Assembly: GCA_964057225.1 (NCBI GenBank)
Contig: OZ059896.1
Span: forward strand, 9,672,001-9,736,000
Length of the DNA stretch: 64,000 bases
Reading direction: 5' to 3'
Source: Auanema rhodensis
Lineage: Eukaryota; Animalia; Nematoda
Part shown: positions 54,501-64,000 of the stretch, one piece after another
Numbering within the stretch: position 1 is the stretch's first letter
Layout: each line of letters opens with the position of its first letter
Program-made: the position numbers and the translations under genes
The notes under the pieces: generated by a model
Told to the model about the DNA's origin: nothing
Seen by the model: the letters and a program-made list of their open reading frames with translations, nothing else
Databases searched by the model: none

Positions 54501-55066
54501 CTACTACGGTGTACGTTCTTCTTCTCTCAGCGAGTACGTGAGATGTTTTAATTTTCTTTCAAGGTGCATTTTTCAGTTCGTCTTCTATTTGTTCATCCTC
54601 GTCTTCGACTTCTCCTTCATACTCTAGTGAAACTGAAAATAGAGTTCCTGTTTCTAGGTTTGATAACTTTAGCTTTAAGTAAATTAGAACATTTTCTAGA
54701 TATTTCGGCAAGCTAGCACCACCACAAGAGAATTATCCCAAGAAAGAATCCGATGAAGAATCAAATGAATATAGACCATTTTCACCTACTCCTACTCCAC
54801 GTCGCCGAGGAAGACAGTCCAAAGATGAACATCTTGCTCATACTAATAAGTTGCCTGTCTCAGCCTGCGAAATCGCCGAAATGCCTCTAGCTGACTTGCA
54901 AAAAATTCTTAAGGATGATCGCTGGACAGAACAGCAGAAAGCTTTGATTAGAAAGATTAGAAGAAGAGGAAAGAATAAGGTTGCTGCTCGTCAGTGTCGC
55001 CTCCGTCGTGGAGACCGTGTTCAAAAGAAACAATGGTGTAGCATGGCTGGAGGGAATTCTCCTTGA
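51547..55066 (+). CDS. skn-1: SKN-1 (Nrf/CNC) transcription factor, long membrane-anchored SKN-1A-type form
   Basis: MGFDRGRRARS start, hydrophobic LHITWIALASVLVLSPL, RPMGIRWRDD, DIDLIDVLWRSDI, NNVSLSEG, RRRGRQSKDE, and basic region IRKIRRRGKNKVAARQCR with no leucine zipper. Confidence 0.94.
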
Positions 55067-57071: not shown

Positions 57072-58580
57072 ATGTTATTCATTAATACAACAAAATTTGG
57101 ATTATCTGAATCTTATTGCACAACGGTTAGTATTAAAAAAGTTCTTGTTCTTATGTCAGAGCAAAAACAATTTTTCTTTAAAAGCAGATATTTGTAAATA
57201 TAAATATTTCTTTTTAGACTGGATTGAATGTTATACGCCATCCTCTTATCAGGTTTTCTCAAATGTGCGCATTTTTAACTTGTGCCTTAGCTATAATATT
57301 ACTTTTCCGTATGCTATTGAAGAAATTGCCTAAACTCAGTTATCATAGAAACTTCAAAGTAAAGTATAATTTATGAATTAAAATATAAAATAGAGGATGT
57401 TTAGTTGATTTTATGGGCTTTTCATTTTAATGCTCTTATTCATGCTGTTGTTATGACATTTAGCCAGGTATTAGCAAAATATATAATTTTTATTTTTCGT
57501 TAATACACTAAATAATTATTTTATTAACATATGTGATAATTCAGATTCATCAATTCTTTCGAGGATTTTTTATAAATGAACCTTGCGATATATTCTTGGA
57601 TTCAATGTATTATCGTAGTGCGAATATCACAATTATTTTAGTAATGCAATTACAGGTTTTTCCTTTTACAACTAAGATATTCTGAAATAATAATTATTTA
57701 GATATGGATGCTTTTTGGTTTATGGGCTGAGAGATTCATTGCCACGATATATCAAAAAAAATACGAAAAAAATATGCAATGCTTTGGCTTAATTCTACTA
57801 ATTTTAACTGTAATTTTTATTTTAATTTCATGATCAATCGAGCATAGCGAAAAATTTGTTTTGCTTTATTGAACAATAGTATATTTAGAAATTAGTACTA
57901 GAACATCAAACAGAGAGGGTTTCTTTCAGTCCATCGTTCCAATTTGTTTGACGTTTTGGGCATACTTTGAAGAAGAGTGGCAAGACCCGGCTTTGAATGT
58001 CATTAATACTCCTCCATCATCAGGAACGAGAGTGAATATCGTGCTTTACATTCATCTAGGAATCTGTTGTTTTTCATTAATTCTTATTATTTCTATTAAT
58101 CAGATTAATCAAAGGCTAAAATTGTCTCTCACTTTCCTTAAGCTTCATTAATTTTTGATTTTTCAGATTCAAAAATCATTCATCACTATCATCTCAATAT
58201 CAAATTTCTGAAAATGTTATCACAACCAGAATATTGATGTATGTATCTATCTTCACGACAACGATGTATATTTTATACATTCTCTGTACCTTGAGTGTTC
58301 GTTTATCTCATAATGCTGTTTTTTTCCGAGACCGATACCCCTTATATCAAGGATTACGTAATGCTGCATACGTAGGTGTCATAACATCATTATAAATAGT
58401 AACATATATTTTAAGATATTACCTCTTTTTGATCTCATTCTACCATTAATTACTCAATTCGTTCATGATCATGGCCGTCGTACAGCTAACATTAAGCGAC
58501 TCGAAGTTCTGTCAACTCCAGCAACTGGAGAAGAAGGATGGAAAATGTACTCTTCAATAATTCAAAAACAGTGGGGATGA
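57072..58580 (+). CDS. Serpentine chemoreceptor GPCR, Srb/Srab-like
   Basis: Spliced exons give YC..G...HPLIRFSQ, YHRNFK, EPCDIF, AERFIATIY..KYE, SLSSQYQISENV, and GWKMYSSIIQKQWG*. Confidence 0.82.
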
Positions 58581-59021
58581 GCAAAACGTTGATTTATTGT
58601 ATTATTTTCATAATCAGGATACATTTCTCAATATAAGAATGCATAATTTTTCAAAATATTGAGGACAAATCTCTTAAACTTATTCATAGTCGAAGAATTT
58701 TTTAGTTATGTATTAGTTAATGACGTTATACTGAATACTCACAATATTACTTTTTAAGAAAGAAGAAACTCTTTTTCTTTTATTTTGATTTTATAATGTT
58801 TCATCGTTATGCAAAGAAATAATTTAATATATCTTATTTCCTTGTCCATGTCAGTTATATGTATCATTCATTAAGTCAGCATTGTATAATATTATTAACT
58901 TTTTTTCTGTGATAACTTTTAATGAACACTGTGGGAAAACATCTGCTATGCATCAATGAACTATTCATATTATTAATCTTTTCCCCATACGATGCATTTG
59001 ATGAATATAAATAATCATAAT

Positions 59022-59179
59022 AAGTCTACATGGCTTGGATATTTTCGTGATCTTGGAACCGAATGTCTACGGAGAGGCTTGATCATTGCACTTTTGATTG
59101 GACTGACCTGTAAGGTAGCTGCGAGTTGAGGTTCGCCTAGAGCTAAAGTTTTGCGTGGGGATGCGTACGCGCATCACTG
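59022..59179 (+). ncRNA. U1: Variant U1 snRNA (divergent 5' end)
   Basis: Colinear with U1 over 158 nt: helix H GCTT/GAGC, SL1 with GATC loop, SL2 with U1A loop ATTGCAC and CTGACC, SL3 with the nematode GAGTTGAG motif, Sm-like AAAGTTTTG, SL4 GATGCG-TACG-CGCATC, 3' CTG. Confidence 0.92.
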
Positions 59180-59403
59180 TTACTTTGATGTAAGCTCGAT
59201 ATTTGAAATGTTGTTTTGTATTCATACGGTGTCTGCTTCGTGTGAAGATTAATGATCTAGAGTTGCAAAACATAGAAACCTTTATTGCACTGTACAGCGT
59301 CAGATATTTAGAATTTTACAATTAAATATGAAATTTGAAACAAAGTGTTTTACGAATCTTCTTCCTGCGGAAGATATTCTTGGGAAGATCAAATATATTA
59401 GTT

Positions 59404-59880
59404 TTAATGGCACTTCATGGCTGAGATATGTAAAACTCCTTTGTGATCAATATTGCTTTTCAAAGTTCCAACGTTAACGTCCTTGGGCAGCTGATAGCAT
59501 CTGTGAAACATCCGAAATTTTTAGAAAATGGGTAGTGACGAGATACCTTGTAATGCTACGAGAGGTCAAAGGTCCGGCTTGATGTCCCTTCATTGCTTTG
59601 TGCTCCAAATGAATCTCAACCAGATCACCAACAGTCTTGACCTACATCATAATCATTTTGACTAAGATCTATGATATCTCATGCGTTGACCTACCTCAAT
59701 TTCGTTTGGAGCGAATGGTTTAGCATCTAAACCAACTTCAAAATGCTCCTCATCTTCCATTAACTATAAGAAATCATGTAATATCAAACTTCAATGATCG
59801 ATGCTTACAGTAACAAACTCGTCATTGTGTTGAAGGGGCCAGTCCCACATCTTGTTCTCATGCACATTTCTAGTTTCCAT
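59404..59880 (-). CDS. hsp-12: 12-kDa small heat-shock protein (alpha-crystallin domain), HSP-12 family
   Basis: WDWPLQHNDEFV, FEVGLDAKPFAPNEIEVK, SRSITRCYQLPKDV...LKSNID.KGVLHISA; 4 exons. Confidence 0.93.

Positions 59881-62098: not shown

Positions 62099-64000
<1,902 letters not shown>

Follow-up and report, generated by a model that had tools for sequence, protein, structure and literature searches.

Results

The window analysed here is a stretch of 64,000 nucleotides of Auanema rhodensis DNA at C4:9672001-9736000, and it carries a diverged U1 snRNA-like body (59022..59181, plus strand) that corresponds to positions 1-166 of the Rfam model RF00003. The body occupies an intergenic space of roughly 8 kb, flanked by a skn-1-like CNC/bZIP C-terminal exon (54851-55066, plus strand) and idh-1-like NADP-isocitrate-dehydrogenase-like exons (63215-63853, plus strand), both recognized by eye from the translations of open reading frames and both belonging to genes that are divided into short exons. 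Its score in the Rfam scan, 59.1 bits (E=7e-14), lies below the gathering cut-off of 69.5 bits, and it is consequently absent from a scan run at that threshold. The more than 40 canonical U1 genes found in the 181-Mb genome score 102-116 bits with the same model. A search for other RNA families on both strands of 58500-59700 (Rfam, E<=10) returned U1 and two snoRNA matches, which we attribute to chance.

In length and in its four-stem layout the variant matches the canonical U1 of its own genome, yet it shares only 73-77% identity with each distinct canonical copy, compared to 85-99% among the canonical copies themselves. Genome-wide DNA queries, one using the 160-nt body and the other 1 kb of sequence surrounding it, revealed no second copy and retrieved canonical U1 alone, at 79-84% identity; the variant is thus a singleton, and its flanks are unique in the whole-genome search.

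Most of the canonical U1 genes are found in 727-bp tandem arrays on contig 3, with a few dispersed on contigs 3 and 7. All four Sm-class spliceosomal snRNAs (U1, U2, U4 and U5) are arranged in this way, each in large tandem arrays with a few dispersed copies: U1 at C3:15.86-16.64 Mb (period ~727 bp), U2 at C1:10.96-11.28 Mb (2.1-2.5 kb), U4 at C4:15.50-15.56 Mb (472-490 bp) and U5 at C8:10.43-10.53 Mb (366-371 bp), where the array copy counts are lower bounds. Two individual copies deserve mention. One, L029 (C3:16045395-16045556, plus strand), is an array-edge U1 with a canonical body whose upstream sequence is replaced from about -40 outward and has no PSE. The other, L002 (C7:16415553-16415713, plus strand), is a divergent but intact U1 that scores 116 bits, differs from the other canonical copies by 12-14%, and retains the canonical 5' arm, SL1 loop and Sm site. 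Its promoter has a PSE variant of its own, CACCCGACACGGGTACG, at about -57 (14.7 bits in a leave-one-out test), and its minimum free energy of -69.7 kcal/mol is very stable, with a predicted fold that is not the cloverleaf.

In C. elegans the PSE is bound by SNPC-1.1/SNPC-4. We built a species-specific PSE matrix from 11 independent A. rhodensis promoters (five U1 types, two U2, two U4 and two U5), which share a 17-nt element of about CACCCATAnnAnATACG starting ~57 nt upstream of +1, and real PSEs score 12.5-25 bits when each is left out of the matrix in turn. The variant has no PSE at this position and no plus-strand site anywhere in -200..+20, where the matrix score peaks at 0.6 bits and ~0.5% of window positions score at least as high; a matrix scan of the window likewise gave no plus-strand PSE-like site of >=10 bits near the variant. 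The two best matrix positions upstream of the variant overlap TCCCCATACG (58982..58991, plus strand, -40..-31), in which the PSE 5' half CACCC abuts the 3' half ATACG with the 7 bases between them missing. This arrangement looks like two PSE halves fused by a 7-nt deletion. The TACG of the putative relic is ~9 nt nearer to +1 than its counterpart in L002, and from TACG on the upstream sequence aligns to the L002 promoter with 17/19 matches and a 3-nt gap (P=0.04 over shuffles), L002 being the nearest relative of the variant's upstream flank. A PSE broken in this manner would be expected to preclude snRNA-type transcription, a reading based on SNAPc-dependent snRNA promoters (PMC9652321).

Downstream, positions 59192..59246 (plus strand) align locally to the 3' flank of a tandem-array U1 unit, that of L006, with P=0.012 against shuffled sequences, and the variant lacks an A-tail after its 3' end. 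As both flanks are homologous to those of true U1 genes and the A-tail is missing, a DNA-level duplicate is indicated rather than a retrocopy; homology into both flanks without an A-tail is the mark of a class I pseudogene, although its statistical support here is modest. The array-flank-aligned stretch contains a minus-strand PSE-like 17-mer (59228-59244, 11.9 bits) that, because of this location, we judge to be there by chance. It points toward the U1-like 3' end and scores just under the weakest real PSE; the 128 kb scanned contain only about four sites of this kind. A Pol III-type reading of TATAAATA at -16 was also rejected, because, judging from the letters, Pol III would terminate at the TTTT runs that the SL2 loop and Sm site contain. 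A separate observation concerns an E-box-like CACGTGAA that follows U1 array genes (L006/L008, about +50..+60) and also U4 genes (L085/L086, about +27..+45), there beside TGACGTCA; the variant has a decayed form of it, CGTGTGAA, at 59238-59247 of the window. The snRNA repeat units may have this motif in common as an enhancer or a 3' element.

The motifs of the variant body fall into those that are kept and those that are altered. The 5' arm AAGUCUACA (59022..59030, plus strand) differs from the canonical AAACUUACC at 4/9 positions, and it does not qualify as a 5' splice-site-complementary arm (ACUUACCUG), where 7/7 distinct canonical copies are identical over the first 9 bases. Within 59022-59036 it can form a 5-bp hairpin, AAGUC/GGCUU, of -3.6 kcal/mol, compared to -0.2 kcal/mol for the canonical sequence. 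This hairpin contains four private changes, of which one is in helix H and the other three are in the 5' arm. New pairs result from G3, C5 and U15, and U4 converts C4-G12 to a wobble. In the folding model, the 5' arm can thereby be sequestered by pairing with the helix-H strand.

Stem-loop SL1 (59037..59068, plus strand) formally keeps 9/10 stem pairs and is rich in A-U and G-U. Its loop GAUCUUGGAA (59049-59058, plus strand) departs from the canonical loop of this species, GAUCA-N-(G/C)-AAG, at three species-invariant positions (A32U, A35G and G37A), or at four columns if a 1-nt gap is counted, and the closing pair has changed from C-G to U-A; tested as a U1-70K site, GAUCUUGGAA falls outside the class. 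The SL2 domain (59069..59111, plus strand) has only 3/43 positions changed, with one C.A mismatch at pair 58-82, and its loop AUUGCACUUUU (59085-59095, plus strand) contains the U1A/U2B'' site AUUGCAC and agrees with the canonical loop at all 11 bases. SL3 (59113..59138, plus strand) is changed at 8/26 positions and has pair 101-109 broken. In the Sm region (59145..59153, plus strand) AAAGUUUUG stands in place of the canonical AAAUUUUUG, the first U of the U-tract being a G, so that the sequence does not conform to A-U(4-6)-G flanked by purines; a shifted register, AGUUUUG, could conceivably serve instead. SL4 (59157..59178, plus strand) has a UACG tetraloop at 59166-59169 and a broken pair 141-158. 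Most canonical copies have UUCG in this loop, and UACG is found in the variant and in the intact canonical L002. The three motifs that are invariant among functional U1 copies yet altered in the variant are thus the 5' arm, the SL1 loop and the Sm site.

These states are those described in the original prediction, which had reported a perfect U1A site and a UNCG tetraloop next to an altered SL1 loop and Sm site and had read them as an asymmetric divergence of the protein-binding sites. The states are correct, whereas the contrast between the motifs lies within chance. With the mean divergence of 23% as the expectation, none of the motifs taken singly deviates significantly (SL1 loop P=0.18, SL2 loop P=0.057, Sm site P=0.24, 5' arm P=0.13). 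A contrast is found at the level of domains, with 3/43 positions changed in the SL2 domain compared to 19/48 in the 5' third (Fisher P=0.0002), and it persists after correction for scanning, with P of ~0.03 for each of the two regions and 0.004 for both jointly. Among the canonical copies the SL1 stems are the most variable part and SL2 is the least, and part of the contrast between SL2 and the 5' third therefore comes from the canonical side. The motif asymmetry, in which the SL2 and SL4 loops are kept and the SL1 loop and Sm site are altered, is mostly sampling noise on top of a true regional contrast.

The folding calculations give a divided picture. For the canonical copy L004 the U1 cloverleaf is the minimum free energy structure, at -62.5 kcal/mol (z=-3.8). 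The minimum for the variant is -37 kcal/mol (z=+1.7) and is not a cloverleaf; when the cloverleaf is threaded on the variant it has -18.2 kcal/mol, or -22.6 kcal/mol with constrained refolding, and is thus 14-19 kcal/mol worse than the alternative fold. At the same time 44/48 standard pairs of the cloverleaf are kept: 32 have both bases unchanged, 5 differ at one base and 7 at both, and the 4 broken pairs are 25-40, 58-82, 101-109 and 141-158. When the 34 substitutions of the variant were placed at random on L004, the simulated decay kept 33.9 pairs on average (P=0.0003), or 36.6 with the observed substitution spectrum (P=0.003). The threaded energy of the simulated mutants was about -7 to -9 kcal/mol with a standard deviation of 10, compared to -23.5 kcal/mol for the variant carrying its substitutions only (P=0.045-0.066). 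Since more pairs are kept than random decay would leave, the divergence from canonical U1 has not been structure-blind.

Six-frame domain searches of the whole genome, which would miss a paralog that lacks PF12220, PF06220 or PF01423, found the U1-70K N-terminal domain (PF12220) at one locus and the U1-C zinc finger zf-U1 (PF06220) at one locus. For the LSM domain (PF01423) there were 16 matches, which belong to about 15 genes, as many as a normal complement of Sm and Lsm genes would have. These whole-genome domain searches thus revealed no spare U1-70K or U1-C paralog and no extra Sm genes.

Discussion

Taken together, the data make it probable that the variant is a promoter-less, decaying duplicate of a U1 gene, that is, a DNA-level pseudogene of class I type. 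That the body is a non-functional relic is indicated by the missing PSE, the energetically disfavoured cloverleaf, the sub-threshold Rfam score, its singleton state and the lack of spare protein partners. In a plausible course of events, a U1 gene and its flanking sequence would have been duplicated into the space that separates the skn-1-like gene from the idh-1-like gene. The copied PSE would then have undergone an internal deletion of 7 bases and lost its proper distance to the start site, and the body would have gathered ~23% change, some of it in the 5' splice-site arm, SL1 loop and Sm site.

The changes in the SL1 loop and Sm site would be expected to have consequences for the assembly of a particle. 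Structures of the human U1 particle show the SL1 loop bases C31 and A32 stacked against RNP phenylalanines of U1-70K, and the three final loop bases stacked against the closing pair; the SmG pocket is occupied by the first Sm-site U, and the equivalent SmD1 pocket does not accommodate a guanine (PMC4383343). Binding of Gemin5 depends most on the first and third U of the Sm site (PMC5131779), and Sm-core assembly on U1 relies on SL1/U1-70K as well as on the Sm site (PMC10870369; PMC5131779). In the variant, A32, A35 and G37 are altered, and so are the loop's closing pair and the first Sm-site U. Weaker binding is expected on both routes, and we infer that, with both sites altered, U1-70K would bind less well and the Sm core would assemble less readily.

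The original prediction had weighed early pseudogenisation against an altered particle, and had suggested a search for duplicated U1-70K, U1-C and Sm genes and a comparison of the upstream region with other snRNA genes. The comparison revealed a PSE common to 11 promoters that is absent from the variant (0.6 bits). None of the partner genes is duplicated as judged by PF12220, PF06220 and PF01423, and with single U1-70K and U1-C loci and an ordinary LSM set the altered composition receives no support. Pseudogenisation itself is borne out by the missing PSE, the Rfam score, the fold and the singleton state, but the qualification 'early' is doubtful because the variant is 23-27% diverged from every canonical U1.

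A live variant U1 would form a particle with weak or no U1-70K, an atypical Sm core, U1A retained and a re-targeted 5' arm, and we regard its existence as unlikely, including its transcription from a non-PSE promoter or within a longer transcript. It would account for the 44/48 pairs kept beyond neutral expectation (P=0.0003-0.003), for the intact SL2 loop in a nearly intact SL2 domain, and for a UNCG-type UACG in SL4 despite the broken pair 141-158; moreover, changes in SL1 or the Sm site need not prevent human variant U1s from being capped and bound by Sm proteins (PMC10870369). However, no PSE lies within 200 nt, the cloverleaf is energetically inferior by 14-19 kcal/mol, the gene is single-copy with no U1-70K or U1-C paralog and no extra Sm genes to serve it, the 5' arm can be hidden in a hairpin, and the Sm site lacks its first U, a base of critical importance in human systems. 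The more specific form of this proposal appears improbable to us: a single-copy, structurally conserved U1 derivative that binds U1A and not U1-70K, has a non-consensus Sm site and a PSE-independent promoter, and acts on special 5' splice sites or outside splicing. If it were live, the variant would represent the first case in nematodes of a U1 changed in both specificity and composition, but the evidence favours the opposite. The altered 5' arm, located on a promoter-less gene with a predicted unstable fold, should not yet be read as a re-programmed splice-site reader. L002 is the better candidate for a live U1 sequence variant in this genome.

The retention of pairs nevertheless has to be reconciled with a dead gene, and because of it we reject uniform neutral decay from L004 as the complete account of the variant. 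Decay along a shorter variant branch is possible. The retained pairs, the marginally better threaded energy and the little-changed SL2 domain suggest structural constraint during part of the history, in which case the variant may be a once-live divergent paralog that later died. Alternatively, the double changes may have arisen on the constrained canonical lineage, with the relic keeping the older pairs. States also present in canonical L002 or L006 account for 3/7 of the double-sided pair changes, and the polarity of the remaining 4/7 needs an outgroup.

It is also quite doubtful that the variant is an old mosaic pseudogene in which ectopic conversion by a canonical U1 gene renewed the SL2 domain (~59069-59111) and so gave rise to the apparent asymmetry: the substitutions are clustered as a mosaic would have them (3/43 in SL2 against 19/48 in the 5' third, joint P=0.004) and the large homogenised snRNA arrays make it evident that conversion machinery is active, but the SL2 domain equals no single canonical copy and mixes the states of L001 and L004, it has two private changes of which one breaks a pair, SL2 is the least variable part among the canonical copies too, and the possible donors are on other contigs.

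The species-specific PSE matrix offers a practical filter that separates live snRNA genes from relics in this genome. Within the genome, the variant resembles L002 in its SL2 loop, its UACG tetraloop, its states at pairs 22-43 and 99-111 and the similarity of its upstream flank. Unlike L002, it has no passing Rfam score, PSE, canonical 5' arm, SL1 loop or Sm site, and no very stable minimum free energy.

The closest known things to the variant are the human DNA-mediated (class I) U1 pseudogenes and weakly expressed variant U1 genes (Denison and Weiner 1982, cited in PMC10870369; Wong et al. 2024, PMC10870369). The human class I pseudogenes form a large dispersed family, whereas the variant is a nematode singleton, and the specific internal 7-nt deletion of its PSE sets it apart from them as well. 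Several human variant U1s have been shown to be transcribed (PMC10870369). What it shares with the human class I pseudogenes and variant U1s is flank homology to true genes, a divergent or defective PSE and the lack of a poly(A) tail.
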